64,000 nt of DNA. Source: Takakia lepidozioides (Eukaryota; Plantae; Bryophyta). The notes below the pieces were generated by a model. It ran no database searches and was not told the DNA's origin. It saw only the letters and a program-made list of their open reading frames with translations. Location of the stretch: positions 57,536,001 through 57,600,000 of the forward strand of contig CM060731.1 in assembly GCA_030704615.1 (NCBI GenBank). Direction: 5' to 3'. The translations under genes and the position numbers were made by a program. Shown piece after piece: positions 7,787 through 48,861 of the stretch (positions are counted from its first letter, which is position 1; every line of letters begins with the position of its first letter).

Positions 7787-7840
7787 TTTCGTGCTTCCCT
7801 ACCTGTCCACTTATTCTCGAGTCATCTCATACTGGGTAAC

Positions 7841-8920: not shown

Positions 8921-8923
8921 TTA

Positions 8924-8938
8924 CCCCTTTCCCCCCTC
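8924..8938 (-). promoter_or_regulatory. Polypurine tract
   Basis: GAGGGGGGAAAGGGG on the - strand, 3 nt before the 3' LTR TG. Confidence 0.9.
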
Positions 8939-12400: not shown

Positions 12401-13640
12401 CTTCCAATCTCAGCTCCTCCAGTATCTTTATCGCCTGTGGGGTAGCCATCGTTTGTTTCTGCAGAATTGTGGTGCTCTTCACCCTGATTTCCTCCATTCC
12501 TCTCACTCTCTTCATTTTAGACTCACAGAACTGCTTTGGCTGTAACAACTGCAGGAATGCCTGTAGTGCACAAAGCATAAACGTATGGTTGCCGCAGAAA
12601 GCTATGGGTAATTTCTTGTAAGCCTGCGGGGCTTGCAAGCATTGCTCAAGAGAAAAGCTCTGCTCTGTCGTTTCGTGTCTATGCCACTGCGTAAGTAATA
12701 TTGCGAGCGTATAGTCTGTTAGTTCCTCCATAGTTTCCAAGTTATAGCATTTATGGCCTGTCCTGTCGAGACGCCCGTTACTCAGAACGACGCCGCCTCT
12801 TGCGCTCAATTTCCCTCCATTTTCTTGATCATTTCTCTGGTTTTCTATTGGCTGTATCTGCTGTGACTGGATTTTAACTTTTATCTTCTTTAGTGGACTT
12901 TCCCTGTTGGATAGTCCACTAGGATCACACATGCGACATGAATTCGGCTTTTCTGTACTTGCCGTTCGTTCCGTTTCCCTTTTTCCGTATTCATTAATGG
13001 GCCCGCCTTTCATCCCATTTGACGGCCGTTCTTGTCCTCTTTCTTTTTGACACCTGTCCTTGCACTTCATTCTCTGCTGTGTGTCGCACCCTGACCTCCA
13101 CGTGTCTATTTTTAAATTAATTTCCGTTTCTTCTTCCTTCAGCCATTTTCCTGAAGTTTTTATGTGTCCACTTGTCACTGATTCTATGGATCGTGTAACT
13201 TTAGTAGGCTGTGTTGAGCTGTGACAGGCTGTGTCATACTGTGTTACGCTGTGATAGGCTGTGATGCACTGTGGTAAGCTGTGATAGGCTGTGATGCGCT
13301 GTGGTAAGCTGTGATAGGCTGTGTCACGCCGTGATGGGCTGTGATAGGCTGTGTTACGCCTTGCTGGGCTGTGATAGGCTGTGTTGCGCCTTGCTGGGCT
13401 GTGATAGGCTGTGTTGCGCCTTGCTGGGCTGTGATAGGCTGTGTCACGCCTTGATGGGCTGTGATAGGCTGTGTCACGTCGTGATGGGCTGTGATAGGCT
13501 GTGTCACGTTTGTTTTGCCCACCCTGGTCATATATGCTGGGCCTAGCGACAAGTGTTCCATACTCCGTTCGTAACACTGGTGCAGCCCGTGACTGCTCTT
13601 GCGGTTCAACATGCAAATCATGCTGCAGGGGTTTGTCATG
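9480..13640 (-). CDS. Long sense-strand extra coding region downstream of integrase (unknown function; broken into ORFs 11388..13856, 10975..11427, 10471..10827, 10000..10434, 9545..10012)
   Basis: Consecutive overlapping or abutting - strand ORFs. They include a 10-aa repeat, a globular-looking region (ILEELRLEGLQSLDW...VQWADIMYNALVEEM) and coiled-coil-like stretches. Confidence 0.65.
13205..13510 (-). repeat. 30-bp coding tandem repeat (~10 units, RRDTAYHSPS-like)
   Basis: Units such as gctgtgataggctgtgtcacgccgtgatgg, in frame within ORF 11388..13856. Confidence 0.95.
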
Positions 13641-19600: not shown

Positions 19601-19617
19601 TCTCTTTCATCACTCAT
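13640..19617 (-). CDS. Gag-Pol polyprotein of copy B (several frameshifts)
   Basis: Gag with three CCHC knuckles (CAKCQNEGHTTTEC, CTICKMDNHSTENC, CYYCNQPGHRKAAC); protease LIDGGS; RT VFLDD; RNase H CDASG..EALA..DH; integrase HHCC plus GLDFVGP/SDQG/GQAE; GPY motif (WKGPY) at the start of ORF 11388..13856. Confidence 0.95.
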
Positions 19618-19638
19618 GTCCCATGTCTTTCATTTCTT

Positions 19639-20280
19639 TTAATGTGGCAATAACCAAAACTCTCTTCTGTAATATCTCTCGTATATGCCTGGGTTTCTTT
19701 CAAGCTTCAATGCACCCTTGGCTATACTTGAAGTCTCCGTTACCATATAACCATATGGCAAACAAGTCTGAAAAGCTGTTCTTGGTGTGAGTTTGATCCA
19801 CAAAATATCCTTTGGAATCCAATTCTTTACCAGTACAAGCTCTTCATGCATATGAGTATAAACATTCACCTTTCTTTCTTCCCAGCCTTCAAACTCTACT
19901 CGTTTAATGGATAGCAACGCTATCACATAAACCAATGTTGGTAACCAACGTGCTCTTCCTCTACAGGCTACCTGATAAATCTTTATCACTCCTTTCTCCA
20001 GACCCCATTCTGGATCAGCATCATGCACTCGTTTAAGAATATTTTCTTTACATCCGTCTGGCAATTCCAAGAACCTTTGAAAGAATCGTTTGGACAATCT
20101 TTCTTCCTTCGTTCCACAGGGAATTTGATTCACTTCAAATTCTTTAATGGTCCAACCACCATGATCCCACCAGATGCCTGTCACATCTGGTTGTTCATGT
20201 CCCAGGTCCCCAGTATGGTCGCCAAATGTCGCGCGGCTTTTACTCACCCATCCCTTCGCTATCCGAGGCGGAAACTCCAA
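19639..20280 (-). CDS. Putative extra ORF upstream of gag, running across the PBS
   Basis: 213-codon open frame with a non-ATG start, conserved at amino-acid level in copy A (6036..6700). Confidence 0.5.
   Translation of the reverse strand: MEFPPRIAKGWVSKSRATFGDHTGDLGHEQPDVTGIWWDHGGWTIKEFEVNQIPCGTKEERLSKRFFQRFLELPDGCKENILKRVHDADPEWGLEKGVIKIYQVACRGRARWLPTLVYVIALLSIKRVEFEGWEERKVNVYTHMHEELVLVKNWIPKDILWIKLTPRTAFQTCLPYGYMVTETSSIAKGALKLERNPGIYERYYRREFWLLPH
20207..20224 (-). promoter_or_regulatory. Primer-binding site, tRNA-Arg-like
   Basis: TGGCGACCATACTGGGGA, 2 nt inside the 5' LTR; resembles the complement of plant tRNA-Arg 3' ends (assigned from memory). Confidence 0.8.
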
Positions 20281-21270
20281 GATAGAAGAGTTGGAAATCT
20301 CTAAGTACTCAGCCCGCGCCAGAACAATCAGTCATGACCTACAGCTAGTGTATCATGGGGTGTTTCCTATTTGTTTCCCTTTCCGCATTCATCTTAGCTA
20401 CCTTACCATTGATAATTAAGTATCAGTTTGCTTCATCAATCTATCGGTTTCCTTCACTCATCCATTCAATCCACAGCTTCTCTCAGATCTCTCTACACAG
20501 TGTGATTGTATCGTATAAGTATCAGATTATGATTTATCAGGTATCAGGCCGAAGCCATTATGTCTCTAATCTGCTCTCCAATATCACTACAGCTTTGCAT
20601 ATAACAAGCATCTACTAATCCTCTTTTCTCCTTCATCGTGCTCTCCATCTCTTGCCTCCGATCTCCGCTCCAGCCTCACTCAGAAGTCCTCCTCCGTATA
20701 ATGATGATCCCCTTCATTCCCCGTTTCTCCCTTTATCCTCCTATCCGCGGTTCTAACCGTTTCCCTCTCTAACCGTCGTCTGTGAACTAACATGTTCCCT
20801 TCGCAGGTGTTGTTCCCACAGTCGTTCCCTGTCCTACTCTTCGTTCCCTATTGATCGTGACCGCTGTGTCAAGCTGTGACTGGCTGTGTGAAACTGTGAC
20901 GGGCTGTGACTGGCTGTGCGACTGTGTTTGGCTGTGTCGGCTGTGTCGAGCTGTGATTGGCTGTGTGGGCTGTGACGACTGTGACGGCTGTGTTGGCTGT
21001 GCTTGGGTGTCGTCTGTGACGGGCTGTGTGGGCTGTGTCTGCTGTGACGACTGTGACGGGCTGTGTTGGCTGTGTCAACTGTGACGACTGTGACGGGCTG
21101 TGTTGGCTGTGTGGGCTGTGACGACTGTGACGGGCTGTGACGACTGTGTAACCCCCCTCTACAGTGCGCTGCTGTCACCCCTAAGGCTCCTGTTGGTCTC
21201 AGTCTGTGCAAAATTAAGGGTACCCTACAGATCCCGTATAAGTGTCTAAGTCCCCTACAGTCCTCTAACA
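20227..21270 (-). repeat. 5' LTR of copy B
   Basis: tgtcgcgcgg...tcctctaaca, followed by TSD gtaac. Confidence 0.95.
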
Positions 21271-26213: not shown

Positions 26214-26544
26214 AACGGAATCCCCAAACTGATAGCCCGTAATTCTCGAAAGGGATCCACCACAAACAAACTGAGGTCAATAAGGTTAGCACTAACCCAA
26301 AGACTGTGGGCGATGCCTGCAAAGGATGTAGGAATGACATGCACCGAACTTCGCAGACAACCACACTGAGAGACACCAACCAGAAAAACTGTTTAGGGTG
26401 ACAAGAAGCCACAAGAAGCCGTGTTGTATTTGGATGAAAAACAAACCCTAAACATGACATGAAACCATCAATTATGGAAAGACGACAACAACCCTAGAGA
26501 GCAGTAAACAGGAAGACCCCGAATGTAATGAGGTTGTGTTGTGC

Positions 26545-28463
26545 ACCTTGTCATTGTTTTTTTCATTTGGAATCGGCCTCATAGGGTATCTCTTTGAGCT
26601 TCAATGCACACTTACCTGGCAGCTCTAGCAGTGTGTGTCAACGCACACTGTTTGAGCCCACCTTGTCATTCTTTTTTTCATTTGGAAATCGGCCTCATAG
26701 GGCATCTCTTTGTTGTTCAATGCACACTTACCTGGCAGCTCCAGCAGTGTGCGTCAACGCACACTATTTGAGCCCACCTTGTCATTGTTTTTTTTTTCAT
26801 GTGAAAATCGGCCACATAGGGCATCTCTTTGAGCTTCAATAAACACTTACGTGGTAGCTCCAGCAGCGTGCGTCAATGCACACTGTTTGAGCCCACCATG
26901 TCATTATATTTTTAATCTGAAAATCGGCCACATAGGGCATCTCTTTGAGCTTCAATGCACACTTACGTGGCAGCTCAAATAGTGTGCGTCAACGCACACT
27001 GTTTGAGCCCAACTTGTCATTGTTTTTTTCATGTGAAAATTGGCCACATAGGCATGTATTTGAGGTTCAATGCAGACTTACCTGGCGCTCAAACAGTGTG
27101 CGTCAACGCACACTGTTCCAGCCCACCATGTCATTGTTTTTTTTTTATATGAAAATCGGCCACATAGGGCATCTCTTTGAGCCTCAATACACACTTTACG
27201 TGGCAGCTCAAAACAGTGTGCGTCAACGCACACTGTTTGACCCAACATGTCTTTATTTTTTTCATGTGAAAATCGGCCACATAGGGCATGTATTTGAGTT
27301 CAATGCAGACTTACGTGGCAGCTCAAACAGTGTGCGTCAACGCACACTGTTGCAAGGCATCCATTTTTTTTTTTTTTTTTTTTTTGATCGGGGCCACATA
27401 GGGCATCAAGGCAGCTCCAGCAGTGTGCGTCAACGCACACTGTTTGAGCACACCATGTCATTATTTTTTTAATCTGAAAATCGCCACATAAGGCATCTCT
27501 TTGAGCTTCAATGCACACTTACGTGGCAGCTCAAATATGTGCGTCAACGCACACTGTTTGAACCCAACTTGTCATTGTTTTTTTTTCATGTGAAAATTGG
27601 CCACATAGGGCATGTATTTGAGGTTCAATGCAGACTTACCTGGCAGCTCAAACAGTGTGCGTCAACGCACACTGTTCAGCCCACCATGTCATTGTTTTTT
27701 TTATATGAAAATCGGCCCTATAGGCATCTCTTTGAGCCTCAATACACACTTACGTGGCAGCTCAAACAGTGTGCGTCAACGCACACGTTTGACCCCAACA
27801 TGTCTTTATTTTTTCATGTGAAAATCGGCCACATAGGGCATGTACTTGAGGTTCAATGCAGACTGACGTGCAGCTCAAACAGTGTGCGTCAACGCACACT
27901 GTTGCAGCATCCATTTTTTTTTTTTTTTTTTTTTTTGAGAAATCGGCCACATAGGCATCTCAAGGCAGCTCCAGCATGTGCGTCACGCACACTGTTTGAG
28001 CACACCATGTCATTGTTATTTTTTAATCTGAAAATCGGCCACATAAGGCATCTCTTTGAGCTTCAATGCACTTACGTGGCAGCTCAAATAGTGTGCGTCA
28101 ACGCACACTGTTTGAGCCCAACTTGTCATTGTTTTTTTCATGTGAAAATTGGCCACATAGGGCATGTATTTGAGGTTCAAAAGACTTACCTGGCAGCTCA
28201 AACAGTGTGCGTCAACGCACACTGTTCCAGCCCACCATGTCATTGTTTTTTTTATATGAAAATCGGCCACATAGGGCATCTCTTTGAGCCTCAATACACA
28301 CTTACGTGGCAGCTCAACAGTGTGCGTCAACGCACACTGTTTGACCCCAACATGTCTTTATTTTTTTCATGTGAAAATCGGCCACATAGGGCATGTATTT
28401 GAGGTTCAATGCAGACTTACGTGGCAGCTCAAACAGTGTGCGTCAACGCACACTGTTGCAGGC

Positions 28464-28494
<31 letters not shown>

Positions 28495-29018
28495 TGAAAA
28501 TCGGCCACATAGGGCATCTCAAGGCAGCTCCAGCAGTGTGCGTCAACGCACACTGTTTGAGCACACCATGTCATTATTTTTTTAATCTGAAAATCGGCCA
28601 CATAAGGCATCTCTTTGAGCTTCAATGCACACTTACGTGGCAGCTCAAATAGTGTGCGTCAACGCACACTGTTTGAGCCCAACTTGTCATTGTTTTTTTC
28701 ATGTGAAAATTGGCCACATGGGCATGTATTTGAGGTTCAATGCAGACTTACCTGGCAGCTCAAACAGTGTGCGTCAACGCACACTGTTCCAGCCCACCAT
28801 GTCATTGTTTTTTTTTATATGAAAATCGGCCACATAGGGCATCTCTTTAGCCTCAATACACACTTTGGCAGCTCAAACAGTGTGCGTCAACGCACACTGT
28901 TTGACCCCAACATGTCTTTTTTTTTCATGTGAAAATTGGCCACATAGGGCATGTATTTGAGGTTCAATGCAGACTTACGTGGCAGCTCAAACAGTGTGCG
29001 TCAACGCACACTGTTGCA

Positions 29019-29055
<37 letters not shown>

Positions 29056-29957
29056 AAAATCGGCCACATAGGGCATCTCGCTTGTGCGTCAACGCACACT
29101 GTTTGAGCACACATGTCATTATTTTTTAATCTGAAATCGGCCACATAAGGCATCTTGAGCTTCAATGCACACTTACGTGGCAGCTCAAATAGTGTGCGTC
29201 AACGCACACTGTTTGAGCCCAACTTGTCATTGTTTTTTTCATGTGAAAATTGGCCACATAGGGCATGTATTTGAGGTTCAATGCAGACTTACCTGGCAGC
29301 TCAAATAGTGTGCGTCAACGCACACTGTTCCAACCAACCATGTTTTTTTTTTTTTTGAAAATCGGCCGCATCTCTTTGAGCTTTAATGCACACTTACGTG
29401 GCAGCTCCAGCAGTGTGCGTCAACGCACACTGTTCGAGTCCACCATGTCATTATTTTTTTAATCTGAAAATCGGCCACATAGGCATCTCTTTGAGCTTCA
29501 ATGCACACTTACGTGGCAGCTCAAATAGTGTGCGTCAACGCACACTGTTTGAGCCCAACTTGTCATTGTTTTTTTCATGTGAAAATTGGCCACATAGGGC
29601 ATGTATTTGAGGTTCAATGCAGACTTACCTGGCAGCTCAAAACAGTGTGCGTCAACGCACACTGTTGTCGAAAACGGCCACATAGGGCATCTCTTTTTTC
29701 AATACACATTACGTGGCAGCTCAACAGTGTGCGTCCCCACCATGTCATTGTTTTTTTTATTGAAAATCGGCCACATAGGGCATCTCTTTGAGCCTCAATA
29801 CACACTTACGTGGCAGAGTGTGCGTCAACGCACACTGTTTGAGCCACCATGTCATTATTTTTAATCTGAAAATCGGCCACATAGGCATCTCTTTGAAATG
29901 CACACTTACGTGGCAGCTCAAATAGTGTGCGTCAACGCACATGTTCCAGCCAACCAT

Positions 29958-29999
<42 letters not shown>

Positions 30000-31200
30000 G
30001 CATAGGGCATCTCTTGAGCTTTAATCCACACTTACGTGGCAGCTCTTGCAGTGTGCGTCAACGCACACTGTTTGAGCACCATGTCATTATTTTTTTAATC
30101 TGAAAATCGGCCACATAAGGCATCTCTTTGAGCTTCAATGCACACTTACGTGGCAGCTCAAATAGTGTGCGTCAACGCACACTGTTGAGCCCAACTTGTC
30201 ATTGTTTTTTCATGTGAAAATTGGCCACATAGGGCATGTATTTGAGGTTCAATGCAGACTTACCTAGCAGCTCAAAGAGTGTGCGTCAATGCACACTGTT
30301 CCAGCCCACCATGTCATTGTTTTTTTATCTGAAAATAGGCCACATAGGCATCTCTTTGAGCTTCAATAACACTTACGTGGCAGCTCAAACAGTGTGCATC
30401 AACGCACATGAGCCAACTTGTCATTGTTTTTTCACTGGCCACATAGGGCATGTATTTGAGGTTCAATGCAGACTTACTGGCAGCTCAAACAGTGTGCGTC
30501 AACGCACACTGTTCCAGCACCATGTCATTGTTTTTTTATCTGAAAATCGGCCACATAGGGCATCTCTTTGAGCGTCAATGCACACTTACCTGGCAGCTGG
30601 CATAGAATCGACCACAAAGGTCATCTCTGTGAGTTTCAATTCACACTTACCTGGCAACCCAAACGGTGTGCGTCAACGCACACGGTTTGAGCCCCCCTGA
30701 TTTGCTTGTTTATGATATGGAAATTGTGCACCTACGGCTAGTCTGGCAAGTTCATTCGACTCCAAAATGGAAGCTCAAACAGTGTGCGCGGACGCACACT
30801 GTTTGAGCCCCCTTCACTGCCTTTTTTTATTTCAAATTGGCCACTTATGGCCACTATGCCATATTAAAATCACACCTTATTGCAAGCTCAAACAGTGTGC
30901 GGCAACGCACACTGTTTGAGCTTCCTTATGTGATTGATTTTGATGTGAAAATCGGTCTCCTGGGGCCACTTTGGCAGGTTGAATCCAATCTTTATTGGAA
31001 GCTCAAACAGTGCGGCAACGCACACTGTTTGAGCCCTTATGTGATTGCTTTTGATTTGAAAATCGGTCCCCTGGGGCCACTCTGGCAGGTTGAATCCAAT
31101 CCTTATTGGAAGCTCAAACAGTGTGCGGCAACACACACTGTTTTGAGCCCCCTTCGTGCTTGTTTTTCTATGTGAAATTGGGCCTAACAGGGCCAGTATG
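26545..31200. repeat. Tandem array of ~115-120-bp monomers, each with a 16-bp-arm palindrome; ~555-bp five-monomer higher-order repeat
   Basis: gctcaaacagtgtgcg-tcaa-cgcacactgtttgagc core. The variant aaggcagctccag recurs at 27408, 27962 and 28521. Confidence 0.95.
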
Positions 31201-31934: not shown

Positions 31935-32150
31935 GCATCATTTGCTCGTTGTCTCCAAACCATTCCTGCTAGAAGAATGCTTGGTGAATCCATCGAAGTG
32001 AAGTCCACGTGATCAAAGATCGTTCAGGCATTCTCAAATCTGGTGAGCATCCATGATGCTCCCGCACATACTTGGCATGTTCACAAAGGTGGTGAGTAAG
32101 AAAAGATTTCGCAGGGATCCGCTTTAGATGATGTCAGTGTGCACCTCCTC
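31935..32150 (-). pseudogene. Diverged fragment of the PLS-PPR gene N-terminal L-S-P motifs
   Basis: Matches 36260-36478 (catcatttgctc.., ccacgtgatcaaagatcgtt, ggtgagcatccatgatgctcccgcac). Confidence 0.8.
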
Positions 32151-32325: not shown

Positions 32326-33925
32326 ATTCTTTATATGAAGGAAAGTCTTTGATAACGTCTAGATGGATGCAATGGATACAAAGGATGGATACAATGGATG
32401 TAATACATCCAGTCTGCATTCCCGGGAAATGGCTGTTCAACCCGCGGTAATAGGTGACACCCGCGGAAATAGGCCCTGTATGCATGCTGACGTGGCGTGA
32501 GCCTGTGCTGGGCTCACGGTTTCCTGGGCTCACAGGCTCACGCCTCCGGGCTCACGGAATAGCACCCCCCTTTGAAATGTAGAATGATAGACAGCCTTCA
32601 CTTGAATTCCTATAAAAAAAGCTTGCAGTCAATCAACACAAATGCCCGGTGAGGCACATACTCAAATGTATTAATTCTCCAACTGTAGCAATTGTGTTCT
32701 GAAGTGGGTGGCCTCTGTCCCCAATCTCCAATGTGCACAAACTGATGTCATAGTGTGAGGCAACCCATTTTTTTTCATTTCATGTACAGCGGCCATGTGG
32801 CTACAAACTGGTGGGGTACAGAGCGTAGGTGACGAACCAGCTGTTTTTCACGTCACGTGGATCGTATGTGACTACAACTATGCACCATATTGTCGCAATA
32901 TGGCGACCATATATGACCAAGAAGACGTTTCGAGGGCGACACATGTTCAAAGCAGGACAAATAAACTTGGCTCATTCAACCTGTTGCGAATCTTGTTGTG
33001 AACAAACGAGTAACTGCACTCAAATCTCACAGGATAAAGCAGAGCACACTTCGAAGGGCCCTTACATTGCAAGAAAGTGGCTACCATAAAAAGGTAGCCT
33101 TACATTGCAGTGCCGACGGCCACCCCCTCTAGCCCTAAAATGCTAGGCGAACGGACGGCCCAAGGCACAGCACATGGCGAGATCCCCCACGGCTGCCACC
33201 CCAACAGGCGCCGGCCGTTGGCCACAGGATCCAGTTCCAAGGCGCCAAGGGGTGGTTCCCTTGGTGCTTTATGGTGACACTCCACCAGGGAACGCATGCT
33301 TTCTGGTTTTTTTTTTTTTTTTCATTTTTTCCCCTGTTTTTATACATTTCTGGCTTTATTTTGCCTAAATAATATGGGCTGAGGAGTCAAGCAGCATCAA
33401 TCAATAACAACATACCCAAATACCCTTACAATATGAACTTTCAAGCAGCCACCATGGGATTGGATCTGGTGGGTTAAGGATAGCTTTTGACAATATTCAT
33501 GCAAGTTCGTCAAGGGCTCCATCCAAAGCCACACCACAAGAAACAAACAAACATGTGCAAATTTAAGATGCTGAACAAACTTGTGCACAGGGCTGCCCCT
33601 CTAATCAAGCTCATCAAAATTCGTATTCACTTCCATCTTCAAGCTTTGGAGAAGCTCCACCACCCAAACCCAGAATTAGGACAGCACTCTGATTTCCATC
33701 CACTGTCACCAAAGTCAGTCCAATATCACCCCTTCAGTCAAGTGCAATTATGGGCGACTTCCCACCTATGCCGGGTAGACCCACTATCATTCCCGTGGAT
33801 ATGCCACAGGAAATGCACTCAACAGTACATCATGGTCAATACTCAGGAAATGGTGGATGATCTGAGTAGCTACACAGATCACTGAATGAAGCAAGACACT
33901 CGCATCTTTCCAAGAAAACATCCTT

Positions 33926-36900
33926 TCACCAGTAATCCCCACAAGAACAAATCCCATCTTCAAAGTGGTGAAAGCGGTTAGCGTCCCGTACAACAATTGC
34001 TCGGCCAACAATCTTTGAGATGAATTTGGTGGAGGTGTGGCAGTCACACACACACTCGAAGATTCTTGATGAGACGGAGAGGCGTCCTAGGGGTCGTGCT
34101 GATCAGCCCAAAACCAATGGCCAGCTTCTCACTGTGGTGGCAAAGAGAAAATTCCTTTTCCTCCTCCCCCACATCGTGCAATACAAAGCGCGTGTCAGGC
34201 ACATACCCCGCCTCCTTCATCTGCCCAGACAATCTTCTCAGCTCAGCATGGATTTCCTTAATTCTGGGATGCAACTTGTCATCTACAACGAAGGTGTGCA
34301 CCCTGTTGCCAACCTCAATGCAGCAGCGACCTGGCTCCTTTCTAACCCCTTTGACCTTCATCATTCTTCTCACCTTTGCAGTATCATCCCACCTGCCAGC
34401 TGCAGCATAGATGTTTGAGAGCAACACATAAGTCGCGGCATCCTGTTCATCCCACGTGAGGATAGATGTTGCTGCACGTTCAGCCATCTCCACATTGCCA
34501 TGGATTCTGCAGGCACCAAGCAAGGCCTTCCACACCACAGCATCTGGATTGATGGGCATTTTATTAATCAGGTCCACTGCCTCATCCAGTTGTCCCGCAC
34601 GTCCAAGAAGGTCCACCATGCAGCCAAAGTGCTTTACTGTCGGAGTGACACCATGATTGACCAGGGAATCAAAGTAGCGTCTTCCTTCATTCAGTAGGCC
34701 AGCGTGGCTGCATGCAGAGAGAACACATATATAGGTGATACTGTCCGGCTTCAAGCCGTTCTTTTGCATTCCTTCAAATAGTTGCACGACTTCCCTATGA
34801 CAACCATGCAGTGCATATCCTGCGATCATCGCCCTCCACGACACCACATTACGTTCAGCCATATTGTCAAACACTCCCTTTGCATCCTCGATGCACCCAC
34901 ATTTGGCATACATGTCCACCAGGGCATGTTCAGGATCACATCTGGTACAATTCCAGCTCTGACGATGTCGCCATGCACCTCTTTGCCCTTTTCCAGGGCT
35001 GCCAGGCTTGCACACGCACTGCAAACGCACAAACGTGATGTGGTCGGGCTTCACCCCTTCCCCCATCATTTGCTCATACGTCTCCAAAGCCTCCATCCCG
35101 CGACCCTGCTGTGCATACCCTGCGATCATCGCGTTCCACGACACCACATTTCGTTCAGCCATATTGTCGAACACTCCCTTTGCATCCTCGATGCTCCCAC
35201 ATTTGGCATACATGTCCACGAGGGTATTGTTCAAAATCACATCTGGTACAATTCCAGCTCTGACGATGTCGCCATGCACCTCTTTGCCCTTTTCCAGGGC
35301 TGCCAGGCTTGCACACGCACTGCAAACGCACACAAACGTGATGTGGTCGGGCTTCACCCCTTCCCCCATCATTTGCTCATACGTCTCCAAAGCCATCCCG
35401 CGCCCCTGCTGTGCATACCCTGCAAGCATCGCACTCCACGACACCACATTTCGTTCAGCCATATTGTCGAACACTCCCTTTGCATCCTCGATTCCCACAT
35501 TTGGCATACATGTCCACCGAGGGTATTGTTCAGGATCACATCTGGTACAATCCAGCTCTGACGATGTCGCCATGCACCTCTTTGCCCTTTTCCAGGGCTG
35601 CCAGGCTTGCACACGCACTGCAAACGCACACAAACGTGATGTGGTCGGGCTTCACCCTTCGCCCCATTTGCTCATACGTCTCCAAAGCCTCCATCCCCGC
35701 CCCTGCTGTGCATACCCTGCAAGCGCGTTCCACGACACCACATTCGTTCAGCCATATTGTCGAACACTCCCTTTGCATCCTCGATGCTCCCACATTTGGC
35801 ATACATGTCCACCAGGGCAGTGTTCAGGATCACATCTGGTACAATTCCAGCTCTGACGATGTCGCCATGCACCTCTTTGCCCTTTTCCAGGGCTGCCAGG
35901 CTTGCACACGCACTGCAAACGCACACAAACGTGATGTGGTCGGGCTTCACCCCTTCCCCCATCATTTGCTCATAGGTCTCCAAAGCCTCCATCCCGTGCC
36001 CTGCTGTGCATACCTGCAATCATCGCACTCCACGACACCACATCTCGTTCAGCCATACTGTCGAACACTCCCTTTGCATCCTCGATGCTCCCACATTTGG
36101 CATACATGTCCACCAGGGCAGTGTTCAGGATCACATTTGGTACAATTCCAGCTCTGACGATGTCGCCATGCACCTCTTTGCCCTTTTCCAGGGCTGCCAG
36201 GCTTGCACACGCTTGCAAACACACACAAACGTGATATGGTGGGCTTCACCCCTTCCCCATCATTTGCTCATAGGTCTCCAAAGCATTCCTACCACACCCA
36301 TGCTTGGTAAATCCTGCCAACATTATATTCCACGTGATCAAAGATCGTTGAGGCATTCTGTTGAACACTTGGTGAGCATCCATGATGCTCCCGCACTTAA
36401 CATACATGTTGACAAGGGTGTTGAGAGAAAAAACATTTGGCGTGAATCCACTTTGGATAATGTGAGTGTGCACCTGCTTTCCAGCTTCCAGGCCTTTCAC
36501 CTTGATGCACTTATGCAAGAGACAGACATACGTTTCTGAATCTGCTGAAATGCCTCCTTGGTTTAAAGTCTGTAGAGCCTCTTTCAGTCTGCCTGCCTCA
36601 CAAAGCATCTTCACATGCCCAGAAGTGCCAGAAGAGGCATTGTGGACTCCCTCTCTTGATCCTCTTCCAGAAGCTGTGGTCATGGTTGAGGTGCCTGATT
36701 TTTATCAACTGTGCCGCTGCAGCTGCTGCCTTTAGTTGACCATCTACCCATGCAGGTTTCTTGTAGCTATTGATCCACAGGGAATCATAGGTAATCTTGT
36801 GCTTGAAATCTGGCCCTCTTGGATGAATCTGTACCCACACTCTACCCCTGCTCCTTCAGCTATCCATGCCTCTGCACAAATCATGCATTCATCCTTGCCT

Positions 36901-38332
36901 TGCTGCTAGCAGCTGACAATGACAGCCTAGATTTGTTCTAGGAAACACCCAACTCAACTTATCACACTAGTTCCTATGCTCAATTGCATCTGCTACTCTC
37001 TGTAATCCAACAGGCATTCACCTTTTTGCCTCGATTGTCCCACCATTGACTGGGGTCAGAAAAGTATTCATTCCACAGCTTCTCCTCGTCTCTGTTACCT
37101 TTTTGGATACTTTCCTGTTGTCACATTGGCAGTATCATGTCAAAGTCACTCCAAACTAAAGGTTCACTCAACCAGCTAACTTGCAGATTCAACATGAAAA
37201 TTTAGGGCCGTTCTGATAAGAGGGAAAAACAGGGTGAAATGTGTTGAAGAAGGTGCCTTCATAGCAGTGCCTGATTTTATCAATTGTGCCGCTGCTGCTG
37301 CGGCTTCCAGTTGACCATCTACCCATGCAGGTTTCTTGTAGCTATCCTTCCACAGGGAATCATAGGTAATCTGGAGCTTGAAATCTGGCCCTCTTGGATG
37401 AATCTGGACCCACACTCCATCCCTGCTCCTTCAGCTATCCATGCCTGCACAAATCAACATCCTTGCCTTGCTGCTAGCAACTGACAATGACAGCCTTAAT
37501 TCTTCCAGCAAAACCCACCATACTTATCACACTAGTTCCTATGCTGACTTGCGTCTGCTTTCCAACAGGCATTCACCTTTTTGTCTCCATTGTCCACCAT
37601 TGACTGGGGTCGGAAAAGTGTTCATTCAAAGCTTCTCCTCATCTCTGTTATCTGTTTTTGGATACTTTCCTGCTGCCACATCGGCACTAACTTGTCAAAG
37701 TCATTCCAAACCACCACAGATCCACTGCAACATATGGCAAATGAAAGGCTACAACTTGGATGCAGACACCATATTCAATATGCAAATTCAGGGCCGAGTC
37801 TGATGAGAGCAAAACAGGCTGAAATAGGTCGAAGAAGAAGGTGCCCTCACCACATTGTCCTTGACCTTGTGTCATGACCCATGGAGGATTTGACCGACCA
37901 TCAACCCAAAAGGACCTCTTGTGTGTGCTGCTTGTGTCTGTAGTCAGGTAATGTCGGATTGGTCTGTGAGAACACCACGGTGCAGCTGAGCAGGCAGAGA
38001 TTGAAACACGGCCTGCTAAGACCAAGCTGACTCTCCCAAGAACCTTGTAAACATCAGGAAGAATACCAAATCATGGTACTAACAGGAGCCAAGAGCCCAC
38101 ATTTGCAGGATGGACAAACTTCTTCGTACATTAAGAAAAAGCCACACCTTGCGATTGCGGTTGTCCCACCATCGTGAAGGATCCTTTAAAAACTCATGCC
38201 AGCTCTGCTCCGTGCTCCAAGGTAGAGGTTTGTGCTCGAAAATCCGACAGCATCAACATTTTGACAAGGTCCTTTACTGAGGGGTGCTAGTGAGCTTTCA
38301 ACAACATTCATGCAAGTTGTTTTGGGCTCCAT
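33926..38332 (-). CDS. PLS-class PPR-E1-E2-DYW protein with N-terminal OSB-type PDF motifs (left copy; frameshifted as assembled)
   Basis: ~20 PPR motifs; PGRCCIE box, HSEKLA, CxDCH and ...CSCGDYW* (stop at 33926). Upstream PDF half-motif exons at ~38148-38210, 37870-37965, 37578-37645, 37270-37403, 37022-37092 and 36695-36828. The 5' end is uncertain. Confidence 0.85.
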
Positions 38333-38717
38333 TGGGCTCTTCCGATGAGGAACAACGAACATGTCCAGACTTACATAGATGCTAACCCAGCCTTATGTTT
38401 GCAGTCTGGAGATTGTACAGTGGTCTCTGAAAACGACCATGGAGGAAGGCGCTCAGGAGCAGCCAAAGTCTTTTACCCTGGGGCTTGGCATTTAAGTTTT
38501 TCTCACGTTCCAATACCCCAAGTCCTTCAAAAAATAAAAAAGTGGCCAAAGCCGGTGGACCGAAAATTGCTTATGGCTATTGCTGCCATGGGGAAGTGGC
38601 CATTGCATGTGGGGCCCATTTGGCGGCTGCATGCAAGGGCTAACCGCTAGGAGCCATCAGAGCGGCACGACCACGACCACAGTTTGGAGTTCGTTGTTCC
38701 TCATCGTGTAGAGCCCA

Positions 38718-41700
38718 ATGGAGCCCAACACCACTTGCATGAATGTTGTTGAAAGCTCACTAGCACCCCTCAGTAAAGGACCTTGTCAAAATGTTGATGC
38801 TGTCGGATTTTCGAGCACAAACCTCTACCTTGGAGCACGGAGCAGAGCTGGCATGAGTTCTTTAAAGATCCTTCACGATGGTGGGACAACCGCAATCGCA
38901 AGGTGTGGCTTTTTCTTAATGTAACGAAGAAGTTTGTCCATCCTGCAAATGTGGGCTCTTGGCTCCTGTTAGTACATGATTTGGTATTCTTCCTGATGTT
39001 TACAAGCTTCTTGGGAGAGTCAGCTTGGTCTTAGCAGGCCGTGTTTCAATCTCTTCCTGCTCAGCTGCACCGTGGTGGTTCTCACAGACCAATCCGACAT
39101 ACCTGACTACAGACACAAGCAGCACACAAGAGGTCCTTTTGGGTTGATGGTCGGTCAAATCCTCCATGGGTCATGACACAAGGTCAAGGACAATGTGGTG
39201 AGGGCACCTTCTACTTCGACCTATTTCAGCCTGTTTTGCCCTCTCATCAGACTCGGCCCTGAATTTGCATATTGAATATGGTGGTTGAGTGAATCTAGTT
39301 TGGAGTGACTTTGACCTGATACTGCCAATGTGACAACAGGAAAGTATCCAAAACAGGTAACAGAGACGAGGAGAAGCTTGGAATGAATACTTTTCTGACC
39401 CCAGTCAATGGTGGGACAATCGAGGCAAAAGGTGAATGCCTGTTGGAGAGAGTAGCAGACGCAATGAGCATAGGAACTAATGTGATAAGCTGAGTTGGGT
39501 GTTTCCTAGAACAAATCTAGGCTGTCATTGTCAGCTGCTAGCAGCAAGGCAAGGATGGCATGATTTGTGCAGAGGCTGAAGGAGCAGGGATGGAGTGTGG
39601 GTCCAGATTCATCCAAGAGGGCCAGATTTCAAGCACAAGATTACCTATGATTCGCTGTGGAAAGATAGCTACAAGAAACCTGCATGGGTAGATGGTCAAC
39701 TGGAAGCCCGCAGCAGCAGCGGCACAATTGATAAAATCAGGCACCGCTAATGAAGGCACCTTCTTCAACACATTTCACCCTGTTTTTCCCTCTTATCAGA
39801 ATCGGCCCTAATTTCATGTTGAATTCTGCAAGTTAGCTGGTTGAGTGAACCCTTGATAGTTTGGAGTGACTTTGACATGATACTGCCAATGTGACAACAG
39901 GAAAGTATCCAGAAACAAAACAGGTAACAGAGACGAGGAGAAGCTGTGGGAATGAAACTTTTCTGACCCCAGTCAATGGTGGGACAATCGAGGCAAAAAG
40001 GTGAATGCCTGTTGGATTACAGAGAGTAGCAGACGCAATGAGGATAGGAACTAGTGTGATAAGCTGAGTTGGGTGTTTCCTAGAACAAATCTAGGCTGTC
40101 ATTGTCAGCTGCAGCAGCAAGGCAAGGATGTATGCATGATTTGTGCAGAGGCATGGATAGCTGAAGGAGCAGGGATGGAGTGTGGGTCCAGATTCATCCA
40201 AGAGGGCCAGATTTCAAGCACAAGATTACCTATGATTCCCTGTGGATCAATAGCTACAAGAAACCTGCATGGGTAGATGGTCAACTAAAGGCAGCAGCTG
40301 CAGCGGCACACTTGATAAAATCAGGCACCTCAACCATGACCACAGGTTCTGGAAGAGGATCAAGAGAGGGAGTCCACAGTGTCTTCTGGCACTTCTGGGC
40401 ATGTGAAGATGCTTTGTGAGGCAGGCAGACTGAAAGAGGCTCTACAGACTTTAAACCAAGGAGGCATTTCAGCAGATTCAGAACGTATGTCTGTCTCTTG
40501 CATAAGTGCATCAAGGTGAAAGGCCTGGAAGCTGGAAAGCAGGTGCACACTCACATTATCCAAAGTGGATTCACGCCAAATGTTTTTCTCCTCAACACCC
40601 TTGTCAACATGTATGTTAAGTGCGGGAGCATCATGGATGCTCACCAAGTGTTCAACAGAATGCCTCAACGATCTTTGATCACGTGGAATATAATGTTGGC
40701 AGGATTTACCAAGCATGGGTGTGGTAGGAATGCTTTGGAGACCTATGAGCAAATGATGGGGAAGGGGTGAAGCCCGACCGCATCACGTTTGTGTGCGTTT
40801 GCATGCGTGTGCAAGCTGGCAGCCCTGGAAAAGGGCAAAGAGGTGCATGGCGACATCGTCAGAGCTGGAATTGTACCAATGTCATCCTGAACACTGCCCT
40901 GGTGGACATGTATGCCAAATGTGGGAGCATCGAGGATGCAAAGGGAGTGTTCAACAATATGGCTGAACGAAATGTGGTGTCGTGGAACGCGATGATCGCA
41001 GGGTATGCACAGCAGGGGCGCGGGATGGAGGCTTTGGAGACGTATGAGCAAATGATGTGCGAAGGGGTGAAGCCCGACCACATCACGTTTGTGTGCGTTT
41101 GCAGTGCGTGTGCAAGCCTGGCAGCCCTGGAAAAGGGCAAAGAGGTGCATGGCGACATCGTCAGAGCTGGAATTGTACCAGATGTGATCCTGAACACTGC
41201 CCTGGTGGACATGTATGCCAAATGTGGGTGCATCCAGGATGCAAAGGGAGTGTTCGACAATATGGCTGAACGAAATGTGGTGTCGTGGAGTGCGATGATT
41301 GCAGGGTATGCACAGCAGGGGTGCGGGATGGAGGCTTTGGAGACGTATGAGCAAATGATGGGGGAAGGGGGTGAAGCCGACCACATCACGTTTGTGTGCG
41401 TTTGCAGTGCGTGTGCAAGCCTGGCAGCCCTGGAAAAGGGCAAAGAGGTGCATGGCGACATCGTCAGAGCTGGAATTGTACCAGATGTGATCCTGAACAA
41501 TACCCTGGTGGACATGTATGCCAAATGTGGGAGCATCGAGGATGCAAAGGGAGTGTTTGACAGTATGGCTGAACGAAATGTGGTGTCGTGGAACGCGATG
41601 CTTGCAGGGTATGCACAGAAGGGGCGCGGGATGGAGGCTTTGGAGACGTATGAGCAAATGATGGGGGAAGGGGTGAAGCCCGACCACATCACGTTTGTTT

Positions 41701-43100
41701 GTGTTTGCAGTGCGTGTGCAGGCCTGGCAGCCCTGGAAAAGGGCAAAGAGGTGCATGGCGACATCGTCAGAGCTGGAATTGTACCAGATGTGATCTGAAC
41801 AATACCCTGGTGGACATGTATGCCAAATGTGGGAGCATTGAGGATGCAAAGGGAGTGTTCAACAATATGGCTGAACGAAATGTGGTGTCGTGGAGTGCGA
41901 TGCTTGCAGGGTATGCACAGCAGGGGCGTGGGATGGAGGCTTTGGAGACGTATGAGCAAATGATGGGGGAAGGGGTGAAGCCCGACCACATCACGTTGTG
42001 TGCGTTTGCAGTGCGTGTGCAAGCCTGGCAGCCCTGGAAAAGGGCAAAGAGGTGCATGGCGACATGTCAGAGCTGGAATTGTACCAGATGTGATCCTGAA
42101 CACTGCCCTGGTGGACATGTATGCCAAATGTGGGAGCATCGAGGATGCAAAGGGAGTGTTCGACAATATGGCTGAACGAGATGTGGTGTCGTGGTGCGAT
42201 GATCGCAGGATATGCACAGCATGGTTGTCATAGGGAGGTCGTGCAACTATTTGAAGGAATGCAAAAGAACGGCTTGAAGCCGGACAGTATAACCTTTATA
42301 TGTGTTCTCTCTGCATGCAGCCACGCTGGCCTACTGAATGAAGGAAGACGCTACTTTGATTCCCTGAGTCAGATCATGGTGTCACTCCGACAGCAAAGCA
42401 CTTTGGCTGCATGGTGGACCTTCTTGGACGTGCGGGACAACTGGATGAGGCAGTGGACTGATTAATAAAATGCCCATCAATCCAGATGCTGTGGTGTGGA
42501 AGGCCTTGCTTGGTGCCTGCAGAATCCATGGCAATGTGGAGATGGCTGAACGTGCAGCAACATCTATCCTCACGTGGGATGAACAGGATGCCGCAACTTA
42601 TGTGTTGCTCTCAAACATCTATGCTGCAGCTGGCAGGTGGGATGATACTGCAAAGGTGAGAAAAATGATGAATGTCAAAGGGGTTAGAAAGGAGCCAGGT
42701 CGCTGCTGCATTGAGGTTGGCAACAGGGTGCACACCTTCGTTGTAGATGACAAGTTGCATCCCAGAATTAAGGAAATCCATGCTGAGCTGAGAAGATTGT
42801 CTGGGCAGATGAAGGAGGCGGGGTATTGCCTGACACGCGCTTTGTATTGCATGATGTGGGGGAGGAGGGAAAAGGAATTTTCTTTGCCACCACAGTGAGA
42901 AGCTGGCCATTGGTTTTGGGCTGATCAGCACGACCCCTAGGACGCCTCTCCGTCTCATCAAGAATCTTCGAGTGTGTGGTGACTGCCACACCTCCACCAA
43001 ATTCATCTCAAAGATTGTTGGCCGAGCAATTGTTGTACGGGACGCTAACCGCTTTCACCACTTTGAAGATGGGATTTGTTCTTGTGGGGATTACTGGTGA
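38718..43100 (+). CDS. PLS-class PPR-E1-E2-DYW protein with N-terminal OSB-type PDF motifs (right copy; frameshifted as assembled)
   Basis: Same architecture as the left copy. GT-AG introns 38903-39087, 39432-39606 and 40001-40191 split the PDF motifs. DYW stop at 43098-43100. The 5' end is uncertain. Confidence 0.85.
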
Positions 43101-46100
43101 AAGGATGTTTTCTTGGAAAGATGCGAGTGTCTTGCTTCATTCATTGATCTGTGTAGCTACTCAGATCATCCACCATTTCCTGAGAGTATTGACCATGATG
43201 TATTGTTGAGTGCATTTCCTGTGGCATATCCACGGGAAACGATAGTGGCGTCTACCCGGCATAGGTGGGAAGTCAGCCCATAATTGCACTTGACTGAAGG
43301 GGTGATATTGGACTGACTTTGGTGACAGTGGATGGAAATCAGAGTGCTGTCCTAATTCTGGGTTTGGGTGGTGGAGCTTCTCCAAAGCTTGAAGATGGAA
43401 GTGAATACGAATTTTGATGAGCTTGATTAGAGGGGGCAGCCCTGTGCACAAGTTTGTTCAGCATCTTAAATTTGCACATGTTTGTTTGTTTCTTGTGGTG
43501 TGGCTTTGGATGGAGCCCTTGAGGAACTTGCATGAATATTGTCAAAAGCTATCCCACCAAGATCCAATCCCATGGTGGCTGCTTGAAAGTTCATATAGTG
43601 ATTGTAAGGGTATTTGGGTATGTTGTTATTAATTGATGCCGCTTGACTCCCTCACACCATAACATCGGTTTGTGCATGTTGGAGTTCAAGGTTGGGGGAC
43701 GGAGGGCACCCACTTCAGAACACAATTGCTACAGTTGGAGACCAGATTTGGGAGCATGTATGAAACAACTATGCATGGTTTCATGCAACAATAACTGCCA
43801 GTGTCCACAGACACAGGTCTCTATCGCCGGTGTGACTCCCAGTGTTCTCAGTAACTAATTTAGCTGCCAATCTCAAACAAGCCAAAAAACTCTCCTCAAG
43901 TCCCCTTCAAGAAAAGTGAGGTCTTTTTCTCTTGCTTCCAGGAACCGTCCAACATCCCAAAAATGAAGCTTTGGTCTGTCATGTTTGTTCAATTAATATC
44001 AATAAAATTACACCCAACTAAGGGATAATTTATGTGAATAATAAGAGGACGATAAACTTACTGCTCCTCCTTTGATCAGAAGGATTTGTAGCGAGCTGTG
44101 GTGCGATGCTCAATTGTGCATTTTCGTTCCTCGCATGCAAGTTTTGGGATAAAGTAAGCATATAGGAATAATGCCTCTCAAGTTTGCATTAGAGGACGGT
44201 TCAGGAATTAAATTGGGGGATATATGTATCCTAGCCGCATGAAAAATAAAATCGACTAAAAGGGAGTTGACATCTGCGAGTTTGCGAGTTTGAGAGCGGG
44301 AGGGTGGCGTGAGGTTTGCCGTGCCACCTGTGGGGAGCAATCCGCCTCCCGGCACCCATCTTCTTGCGCTTTGCACATGCCTCCATAAAAGGCACTTGAT
44401 GTATTCTTATACCGAGCCACCGGTGGGGATGGTCTAACCTCGGGATGGTCTAACCAGGATATATAACGTTTGACGGGCCGTGCTCACCGTGGAGATGCTC
44501 TAAAAGTCAAACGCGTAAAGCTGCCGTTGAAACAGTAAACGGTACTTGACACCCCTTAGTCAAACACCAATCAACTTTATGCGTTCACACGGACCAAAGA
44601 CTGCGCGAGAAGATAAGAGTCCGCAGGCCGCTAAAGCACGATGCTTGCGGTGGCGGTGCTTCCAGTTGGAATCAAGTCTTCCATTTCACTGCGTGGGCCA
44701 AGGAACCGAGTTACGATGGGCATCGGAGATCTCCAGATGGTGCATAAGACCTCGTTCCTCCCCAAGGACGAGCCAAATCGCTGTAGGAGCCCTTGCCCTT
44801 CATCTTGAGAGCCTTGCGTTAGACTGCAGGAGCCTTAGCCTGAACTTCTACATCTCTTCTATGTCTGAAAAGGTTGGAGCTGAAGAAACGTACTGGCAAG
44901 ATTCTCATTGCAGGTCTTTCCAGGATGACGTTATTCGAGATAGTACGAACTATGAACGTATGAACATTTGTAAAGTTAGTCTTGAACTGCCTTCACCGTC
45001 TGCTAAAAAATTGAAGTCAAGTTTGAATCTGGAGATCCCGTTTTTAGTATGTATGTACCGAAGACTTACGTTCGAATACGTTCTGGAGAACCCTAGAAAC
45101 TTCCTTCCTGCTTTGGAGGTCATTAGTCGCTGCTCAAGATACCTCCGACCTTCAGGCTAACGTTGACCTTCAGGTTTCCTCAGATCTTAAGGTTACCTCC
45201 GCCGGAGATGTCCATCAGTTCCGGTGCTTCTTCTTTCTCTGTTTCTACAAAGGGTTCTCAGTCATTTCTTACGTTCTCCTACCTTTTATGTACGCTGATG
45301 TTTTGGAGGGGAAAAAGCGTACCCCGTGTTCGGCGACGTAGCTTGCATGCCCCTTGCCTCAATTCTCACTCTCAAGCTTCAACCGTAGTGAGCGAGCGTA
45401 CAGCTGATCGACCCAGCAATCCATCAATTCTCTTACACATGAACGCAAGCAGTGCTCACCTTCTCGCCGTCATATGAGTACCAAGACTACGGAAGCCCCC
45501 GGATCACAACTTTCCTCCGCCCAAGAGGTTTGAGCTCAGGATCTGCATGTACTGCACATGCCAGTGTGGTCGAGCTCAAATTTCTCGTAAGGACTGAGTT
45601 CAGTTTTGCAAGTTTATCCGAAGGTGAGTTATCGTATTATCATTCGGTTGTTCAACCTCGGAGGCGTGTGGTTGCTGCTCATGGACTGAGAGTTATCCCT
45701 ACGATGACCAGTGACCAAGGAATTGTTGTACGTGCAGGTCCTGAGAAATTTGATGGAGTTATTGGAGTTTGTGTCCTAGTTCCATTGATCACGAGGGATG
45801 TTCAACATTTTCTCCACTTTTGAGCTTCAAATGGACATCCAGCTGCAACCAAGGAATAGACCTGTTTCTAACATTCCAATCCCTCTTGAATCAAAGGATC
45901 CGAACACCACCGGCCGCTTAGCATCAATTGTCAGTTCCAAGCTTGACCCGCAGTGAGTGAGAGTGCGGCTGACCCAGCGACCCACCTGCGACCCATTGCA
46001 GCTTTCCACATGAACGAAGATAGGACGAAGATGCAGCACTTGATCCGAAGACGAGTAGGTGGGATCGGAAGAGGATCGGCAGGTCATGAGCGTAGCTAGC

Positions 46101-46125: not shown

Positions 46126-48861
46126 ATGAAGCTCTTCATTGAGGTCTCGGTATTGGTATGTGTTATTTTCCTGCTTGATATTGGCGACGCTCAACCTGGC
46201 ACTCCGTCTGCTCCATTCGTCGACTTCACCTACCCGAATACCAGCGCCAAATCTGAACCATCGTATCCATTTCCCAGTTCGTCGACTTACCGGCAAGGCC
46301 AGTCTAACGTTGAGATTGCCACTGAAAACTGTTTCCGATCACGGTCTGTACATGGAGTTAATGACTCGGCCGTTGAAGGAACGACTGGGAAATGTCTGCA
46401 TCCCACACCCATCCGCTTTAAGGACTCCTCAGGTTCTGTTTTCTCATTTAGCACCGTATTTGTGGCTGTTGTCATACTTGGATCGCCCTCAGTACTGCGG
46501 AGAGGATACGGAACATATGGTTCAAGGTGGTCAAATAATCTGGAAGGGTTTGCTTTTGCTATTCTTCCTGATTATAATATATCGGTAGGAGGCGACGGAG
46601 GATACCTCGGCCTGCTCAATGCCACTGGGAATGGGAACCCTCAGTCACACGCTTTTGCAGTGGAGATTGACACCGTCCAGAGCCCTGAATTTTCAGACCC
46701 TGATTTTTACCACATAGGAGTTGACATCAACAACATGAACTCATCTTCATGGGCTGGGATCGATGGTCCATCTAACTATTGGGACACAGACGATAGAATC
46801 ATATGGGAACTGCAAGTTTGGATAGATTATGACAGCTCAACACAAGCGCTGAGTGTCGCCATTTTGGACATCTCGCAAAGTATTTGTCCAGCCAAATCTC
46901 TTGGATTGCCTAATATGATGGATCTAAGCATACAGCTTGACCTTTCAAACGTTCTCAATGAATACATGTATGTGGGTTTCACTTCTGCCCGGTCCTCCTC
47001 TTACTCGGACACGCTCAGAGATAGTACGAACGTTGATCCTGATGGGAACGATTACCTCTTCGGAATCTATGGATGGAGTTTTAGTACGGCCAACTCCACC
47101 ACCAGTGCGCGGAGTTCCTCATTGACGTGTTTTCCTCGTCAAGCATATATTACTAAGAGGACTCTGTGGGATCGACATCCATACCTTGTCAACCTAGTGT
47201 CAGTCCTGGGTGCCCTGCTGGTCCTTTCTGTTATCTACTCCATCATCTACTCAGTCTATGTGCGATGGGATGAAAGACGGAAGTGGAGGTTCAACATCGA
47301 TGCCGATTTGGAAGCAGGTCCTCACACATTCACGTACAGAGAGCTGGCCCTCTCGACAAATAACTTCAGTGCGAAGCAGGCTTTGGGCCGCGGTGGATTC
47401 GGAAGCGTCTACAAGGGTTTCTTGCCCGGAAACCAACAATACGTAGCAATCAAACGAGTATCGCGGGAATCGAAACAAGGTGAGCGCGAGTTCCTGGCGG
47501 AGGTGACGATCATTGGCAGGATTCGGCATCGTAATTTGGTGAGGCTGCAAGGTTGGTGTCACGAACGTGGAGAGCTGTTGTTGGTGTACGATTACATGCC
47601 CGAAGGAAGCGTTGACAAGCTTCTTTTTGACGGCCATGCCGTCGGAGCGGAGGGCAAACTTGACGGAGATGTACGATTCCCTTGGGAGAGAAGGTAGACT
47701 CTTCCTCCCTTGATCACTATGCGCACAATTTGAAGATCCCAATTGTCCTCAAAATCAGCAATGAGCATGAAGCTCATTTTATAACACTGATTCGAGACTG
47801 ATTCACTTGTTGCATAAAATTGAATGTGTGCTGGCTTATCGTCAGATTCAAGATCATACGAGACGTAGCGTCAGCACTTGTGTATTTACATTACGAGTGC
47901 GAAGAACGGATCATTCATCGAGATGTGAAAGCAGCGAACGTGATGCTGGACTCAAAATTCAACGCACGATTGGGAGATTTTGGGTTAGCGCGGTCGTATC
48001 AGCACAGCCTGCTCTCTCAACAAAGCACCAATGTGGCCGGCACATTTGGGTACCTGGCCCCCGAATTGTATCACACCGGTAACATGAATCATTTTCTTTG
48101 TCTGCGCCCCCCTCTCTTTTCTTGGCTCCGCTGTGATCTGGGTTTTGTTGTACACCCTTGGAACGTTGTTGTCGTTACACTCTGTATCTTCGCTCCATGA
48201 TTCCTAAAAATGTAATCTCGGTTCAATCTTCAAACTTTCTGTCATTTCTTAGAGCTAATCCTCCATCTTTGACGAAAGGTGTAACTACAGCTTTGAACAA
48301 ATAATAAATATCCCGGGGAATCGAGTTGTAATTGCAGGGAAGCAAACAGAGCAGACGGACGTGTTCAGCTACGGGGTTTTTATATTAGAAGTGGCATGCG
48401 GAAGAAAACCGATCCATTACGACAGTTCCAATGATGTGGTCTTGCTTCTGGATTATGTTTGGGACCAGTGGAGTAATTCTCGTATATCGGACGCTGCCGA
48501 CCCCAAACTCGCCGAACTATATAACGTTGATGAATTGACCAAAGTTCTGTGTCTAGGGCTCCTCTGTACCCACCCTGATCCTGCCGCAAGGCCGTCCATG
48601 CGCCATGTGCTTCTCATCCTCACTGGAGACATAGCTCTTCCCACAGTACCAACATCGAAACCCCATATGGTGTTTTCTATCCGGCGCACATTATCAAAGG
48701 ACCTTGACACAACTACGACGGTAGATTATGACAGTGACCACACACAAGGAGAAATGGAGGTTCATGTCCCACCTAGTCGAGCAGGGACTTCGGAGATCAT
48801 TCCCTTGGAAAATGCTCTGCACAGCGACCAAATAAGTCTCATGCGGGCAAAAAGTGCATGA
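46126..48861 (+). CDS. LecRK: L-type (legume) lectin receptor-like kinase; exons 46126-47693, 47846-48078, 48338-48861
   Basis: Signal peptide; lectin motifs ([30 protein letters not shown]); TM helix; kinase motifs GRGGFG, VAIK, HRDVK, DFG, APE, DVFSYG; phase-consistent GT-AG introns. Confidence 0.95.

Follow-up and report, generated by a model that had tools for sequence, protein, structure and literature searches.

In a 64,000-nucleotide stretch of the genome of the moss Takakia lepidozioides (GenBank assembly GCA_030704615.1, contig CM060731.1, positions 57,536,001 to 57,600,000 of the forward strand; here called the window), we found an inverted duplication of about 10 kb that contains two pentatricopeptide repeat (PPR) genes of the PLS class with a DYW domain, placed head-to-head and each pointing outwards. 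Each of these twin genes contains five near-identical modules of L, S, and P motifs, and the alleles of the modules form a fine mosaic. The account that we favor, and hold to be reasonably probable from the sequence evidence, is that one triplet was amplified in tandem, that the gene was duplicated in inverted orientation, and that repeated short conversions then redistributed old alleles of the RNA code, leaving twins with different predicted targets.

Two PLS-class PPR-DYW genes in an inverted duplication

Both genes encode P, L, and S motifs (35, 35, and 31 amino acids) in an array that closes with P2-L2-S2, followed by E1, E2, and a DYW domain with its PG box, HxE, CxxC, and terminal DYW, all read piecewise in each arm (Pfam E, E+, and DYW_deaminase). 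Judged by architecture, both arms code for PLS-class PPR-DYW C-to-U editing factors. An identity as transcription activator-like (TAL) effectors was rejected because the Pfam search matched PPR and DYW families and no TAL effector family. Likewise, the genes are not restorer-of-fertility-like (RFL) genes because their architecture is PLS-DYW and not a P-class array of 15 to 20 motifs without E or DYW. In each arm, the order from 5' to 3' is PDF-like exons (two repeats of ~570 bp), a divergent L-S-P triplet, five 303-bp L-S-P modules, and L2-S2-E1-E2-DYW, with the following coordinates.

33373 to 38360, minus strand: left arm of the inverted duplication (blastn, 94.6% across 5056 columns against 43661-38689)
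38361 to 38688, no strand: single-copy 328-bp spacer separating the two 5' ends
38689 to 43661, plus strand: right arm of the inverted duplication (blastn match to the left arm)
39199 to 40329, plus strand: right-arm ~570-bp intron/exon repeats A and B, coding PDF-like motif halves (~39285-39640 of A matches B)
36691 to 37849, minus strand: left-arm pair of PDF-like repeats (copy A unconverted)
40330 to 40764, plus strand: right-gene divergent N-terminal L-S-P triplet (S code NS, P code ND; the arms differ by 2 substitutions in 434 nucleotides)
36252 to 36690, minus strand: left-gene divergent N-terminal L-S-P triplet (Pfam PPR matches, translation)
40765 to 42270, plus strand: right-gene five 303-bp L-S-P modules (starts 40765, 41065, 41369, 41671, and 41973; P2 ends the fifth)
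34758 to 36251, minus strand: left-gene five 303-bp L-S-P modules (starts 36251, 35952, 35657, 35359, and 35056)
42271 to 43100, plus strand: right-gene L2-S2-E1-E2-DYW (PG box, HSE, CxDC, and terminal DYW in pieces; indels of 1 to 2 nucleotides)
33926 to 34757, minus strand: left-gene L2-S2-E1-E2-DYW (Pfam E motif, E+, and DYW_deaminase; a single frameshift within a GT run immediately upstream of CxDC)
7585 to 7786, plus strand: dispersed S-P half module of the family of the ten modules

The inverted duplication is gap-free. The flanks outside 33373 and 43661 are mutually unrelated, for which reason we rejected the possibility that the arms are two haplotigs of a single locus. Since homology of the left copy ends at 38360, the left gene may lack a true start or promoter. 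The PDF-like motifs (38850 to 40330 and 36690 to 38200) are made of intron-split WWDNR and PDFKHK halves at the 5' end of both genes, and such a motif also stands at the head of Sphagnum P0100 and Diphasiastrum P0003. A read-through transcript of the entire palindrome could form a 5-kb hairpin. Adjoining the left arm, at 31936 to 32149, lies a decayed fragment of an N-terminal PPR triplet (77% identity).

Probable exchange of alleles among modules

An earlier sequence-only reading had described five near-identical 101-amino-acid modules per gene. Alignment bears this out: the module consensus is 303 nucleotides (101 amino acids), and the ten modules are 94.1 to 98.3% identical pairwise. Between the arms, the modules differ at 47 of 1,486 sites (3.2%) versus 30 of 2,879 (about 1%) in the unique parts (p = 1.2e-6), with 9 differences in 1,261 sites of the unique coding parts; the excess of module divergence over C-terminal divergence is 3- to 4.5-fold. 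Modules at the same position in the two genes were no nearer to each other than permuted pairs (35 versus a mean of 37; P = 0.35). We rejected an offset of the arms by one module, as the shifted distances (4 to 12) were not better than the positional ones.

The same reading had proposed conversion or unequal exchange among modules and had set a nucleotide alignment of all ten, for diversity and tracts, as a check. This alignment revealed mosaic alleles: 32 of the 55 informative site pairs showed four-gamete incompatibility, which requires at least five exchanges within about 205 nucleotides. Outside the modules, the middle ~350 bp of repeat A in the right arm has the sequence of repeat B at 37 diagnostic sites, being equal to both B copies and different from left-arm A. 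By this comparison, the segment is a conversion tract in a non-PPR repeat, present in one arm only. These four-gamete pairs, the lost positional identity, and the repeat-A tract, along with the replicate in a second plant described below, support the proposed exchange.

The half module at 7585 to 7786, 26 kb away, has eight minor alleles in common with the ten modules, four of which are singletons among the modules. Because they recur there, singletons included, these eight alleles are not read errors; the allele pool is real and family-wide. The half module, with a 6-nucleotide duplication, belongs to a scrambled three-piece family fragment at 7081 to 7790, which also has an N-terminal PPR piece and a PDF exon/intron piece and is wedged between two long terminal repeats (LTRs), the first of which ends at 7072 while the second begins at 7838.

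The sequence-only reading had further likened the reshuffling to TAL effector-like reprogramming. A code-directed program of that kind, peculiar to this locus, was not supported. Synonymous sites, intron sites, and the non-PPR 570-bp repeat were exchanged too, so the shuffling is not code-specific, and homogenized triplets are common in seed-free plants. Code-targeted shuffling was rejected, and the exchange, as far as sequence comparison tells, is ordinary homology-driven recombination that does not distinguish code sites from others. Their prominence comes from the disproportionate share of surviving alleles that they hold.

Code strings and predicted RNA targets

In PLS-class factors, the 5/last code is read in P and S motifs and the S2 motif stands opposite position -4 relative to the editing site (PMC10482289); L motifs are considered chiefly spacers (PMC7190159). 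From the alignment, the S,P code pairs, N to C, are TN,ND; TN,SD; NN,ND; NN,SD; TD,?D in the right gene and TD,SD; TN,ND; NN,SD; NN,ND; TN,RD in the left gene, exactly as the sequence-only reading had given them. For module 5, neither gene gives a secure P5 call, the right having a 2-nucleotide deletion and the left a unique codon. Applied to these differing strings with S2 at -4, the published PPR code predicts different RNA targets for the twins, and the two patterns, which agree with those written earlier, differ at six positions.

Next, we examined where the variation lies. The code alleles in the pool are S5 T/N, S-last N/D, and P5 S/N. Code sites make up 3 of the 10 recurrent amino-acid positions (Fisher p = 0.013) and carry 12 of the 35 amino-acid differences, being 6 of 100 positions; once linked changes are counted singly, the enrichment has a p value of 0.018. 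Coming from only ten noisy modules, this enrichment does not by itself separate selection from relaxed constraint. The sequence-only reading had named a lack of enrichment at code positions as one of the results that would speak against it, and the module alignment showed enrichment (p about 0.01 to 0.02). However, its wording that variation sits largely at these positions was overstated since most recurrent variation is elsewhere (S6, which is linked to S5, and S16, S25, S26, P8, P16, and P29). Similarly, the L motifs, described as almost invariant, have no recurrent amino-acid change at this locus, but L2, L5, L14, and L25 vary in the paralogues of assembly ERZ25073694 (see below), and invariance as a general rule was rejected. 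The remark that L motifs would fall on wobble positions if the edited C is codon position 2 is arithmetically correct but true of any PLS array. The module-1 L motifs of both genes probably end in N and not D (in the right gene, 40876-40884 lacks one A in an A run); their agreement would be a trace of positional identity.

In the account that we favor, an ancestral gene would have amplified one L-S-P triplet in tandem, after which the amplified gene would have been duplicated into the inverted pair. With triplets 94 to 98% identical, conversion between modules would recur. Short gene-conversion events would copy stretches among the modules of the same gene, its twin, and perhaps dispersed family members, and unequal crossovers that keep the module count at five may contribute. 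Conversion would maintain a uniform scaffold while moving the few old alleles of the pool, those at S5, S-last, and P5 included, from module to module. This redistribution would make the twins differ in the RNA targets predicted for them, although they have diverged by only about 1%.

A replicate in other plants

The European Nucleotide Archive assembly ERZ25073694, whose source plant we infer from motif style to be moss-like, has three intact 925-amino-acid PLS-DYW paralogues (P0102, P0114, and P0115; L001 to L003) that are 94 to 96% identical over 8 to 10 kb. Like the twins, they have five L-S-P modules each, enrichment of code sites (4 of 13 recurrent positions; p = 0.002), and mosaic alleles, with 30 of 78 site pairs incompatible and four gametes at sites 6 nucleotides apart. 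Unlike the twins, they have an independent consensus, distinct from that of the twin-gene modules, as well as intact frames and variable L motifs. Their triplets are 93 to 96% identical, their modules diverge 1.8 to 3.9 times more than the C-terminus, and no palindrome was found within their 10-kb flanks. The presence of the same pattern in this assembly indicates a real phenomenon that is not confined to the twin locus.

Homogenized arrays also occur in Diphasiastrum and Sphagnum. In a set of 268 PPR matches that is skewed to repetitive proteins and includes duplicates, 27 matched themselves at 80% identity or more across 200 residues, almost always at lag 101; these include proteins of Diphasiastrum, Sphagnum fallax, and Cryptomeria. 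When the single best triplet pair was taken from each of 15 other proteins, excluding the ERZ25073694 trio, 21 of 151 differences were at code sites, where 9 were expected (p = 3e-4). By these sequence comparisons, the combination of homogenized triplets and variable code residues is more widespread among the editing factors of seed-free plants.

Assembly quality and alternative explanations

Both genes are frameshifted as assembled, with small indels in 9 of the 10 modules and in the unique coding parts. The modules hold 21 deletions, nearly all private and 1 to 3 nucleotides long; further indels are C-terminal, and comparison of the two arms gives 16 indels per kb. The unique parts of the arms have 42 indels versus 30 substitutions, a ratio of 1.4 (0.7 for the arms overall) that compares with 0.08 in old retroelement copies and 0.10 to 0.15 in accurate moss paralogues. 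A young LTR pair in the window has an equal indel excess (3 substitutions, 6 indels), and the adjoining single-copy kinase, which served as a sequence-quality control, has zero frameshifts. Such a pattern would be expected if long-read errors had escaped correction in near-identical repeats. It speaks against pseudogenes, and the frameshifts are probably unpolished assembly errors.

Several observations weigh against the account that we favor. Both twins read T,T,N,N,T at S5 along the array, and only P5 and S-last differ. The ERZ25073694 paralogues keep some positional identity (P about 0.05), which is wholly lost in the twins. At the 5' end, no clean reading frame leads into the first PDF-like motif, and the two arms have stops in common there. 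Moreover, with arms so plainly unpolished, the placement of some alleles may reflect a mosaic consensus.

This last point leads to an explanation that we consider unlikely but by no means negligible, in which the alleles are real and their order is partly a mosaic assembled from mixed noisy long reads of the twin arm or the family, with short reads failing to correct it and the twins truly more alike. It draws on the high indel-to-substitution ratios next to a frameshift-free single-copy kinase and on the finding of all four combinations at sites 8 nucleotides apart in twin modules. However, the two-base alleles are perfectly linked, and the 37-site tract separates the arms cleanly. An equally fine mosaic is also found in the independent ERZ25073694, where frames are intact and the module excess is of similar size (1.8- to 3.9-fold versus 3- to 4.5-fold).

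Alternatively, the sequence could be correct and the frameshifts real, both copies being decaying pseudogenes that convert neutrally and yield no new editing specificity. We think this distinctly improbable. The indels in question, despite the 21 module deletions and those at the C-terminus, are almost all of 1 to 2 nucleotides and private to single copies, and they exceed substitutions in the unique parts, as they do in the young LTR pair. The substitutions in the modules create no in-frame stop, and the catalytic motifs are retained in both arms; the 5' end, with its shared stops, remains a feature that decay would explain.

Divergence by recurrent point mutation without any exchange, through CpG deamination and selection at code sites, is very improbable. 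CG context accounts for 5 of the 12 recurrent nucleotide sites, but with CpG sites removed, 10 of 21 pairs are still incompatible and at least three exchanges are needed. The S5-S6 and P5 alleles consist of two linked bases each and recur four times each, which makes repeated point mutation unlikely, and the repeat-A tract cannot arise in this way. That the entire palindrome is a fold-back assembly artifact of a single gene, as its long arms, short spacer, and error-prone sequence might suggest, is scarcely credible given the different unique flanks on each side, the absence of a gap, and arm-specific linked differences that include a 35-nucleotide indel and the 37-site tract.

Other features of the window

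At 7838 to 20664 lies an LTR retroelement whose two LTRs differ by just 3 substitutions in 438 nucleotides, with a related partial copy at 1407 to 7072 (88.5%); a 10/30-bp internal repeat is found at 13205 to 13508 within a long open reading frame of the retroelement. At 26544 to 31177 is a satellite array with a unit of ~115 bp, broken by T runs of 28 to 40 nucleotides. The control kinase (46126 to 48744) is a three-exon, frameshift-free L-type lectin receptor kinase, whose closest named relatives are Ceratodon proteins (51%), which marks the stretch as moss DNA.

Relation to known systems and significance

The twin genes share with other PLS-class PPR-DYW factors, such as Physcomitrium PPR56 (PMC10482289), the PLS array, P2-L2-S2, E1, E2, the DYW deaminase, and the 5/last code in P and S motifs. 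They differ in having mosaic triplets that are 94 to 98% identical in DNA, 5' PDF-like exons, and differing predicted targets. In the P-class RFL genes, similar motifs recombine within and between genes or undergo conversion or unequal crossover, positions 5 and 35 are highly variable, and predicted targets are changed (PMC5075784 and PMC2848758). Recombination among motifs and paralogues with excess variation at code positions is likewise present in the twin DYW genes, whose evolution, by its sequence traces, works like RFL motif recombination. The twins are not RFLs: RFL genes lack a deaminase, and the transcripts that they act on are those of sterility in flowering plants, whereas the unit here is a 101-amino-acid L-S-P triplet inside a deaminase-bearing editing factor.

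Internal duplication of motif blocks in the PLS (PCMP) subfamily was proposed by Rivals et al. (2006), as cited in PMC2848758. In the form cited there, the proposal likewise derives the array from tandem duplication of motif blocks and explains the architecture, whereas the twin copies are young enough to show continuing exchange and reshuffling of the code at the nucleotide level. We did not find nucleotide-level conversion that reshuffles the code in DYW editing factors reported in the literature, an absence that is only weakly tested. A recent survey addresses whole-gene duplication and makes no mention of gene conversion. TAL effectors, which are bacterial DNA-binding proteins, also have near-identical repeats with variable specificity residues that are rearranged by recombination; the likeness to the twin genes is one of analogy, with no homology.

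In some mosses, hornworts, lycophytes, and ferns, PPR genes number in the thousands and editing sites are very many; Takakia has 2,016 PPR genes (PMC13386178). Duplication and recombination have been reviewed as a reservoir of specificities, with RFL loci as the example (PMC10226603). We tentatively raise the possibility that near-clonal P-L-S-triplet DYW genes of heavily editing seed-free plants are a standing generator of RNA specificities and that the twins are intact, with different real targets. If so, conversion would shuffle code alleles fast enough that twins 1% apart read different sites, and it would provide the steady supply of novel editing factors on which constructive neutral evolution depends. 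Because the twins combine one scaffold with different code strings, within-gene reshuffling is directly testable in an Escherichia coli editing assay, and the natural near-clonal scaffold may serve designed editors. Reshuffling within genes would thus be a possible route to new specificities where editing sites are very many.

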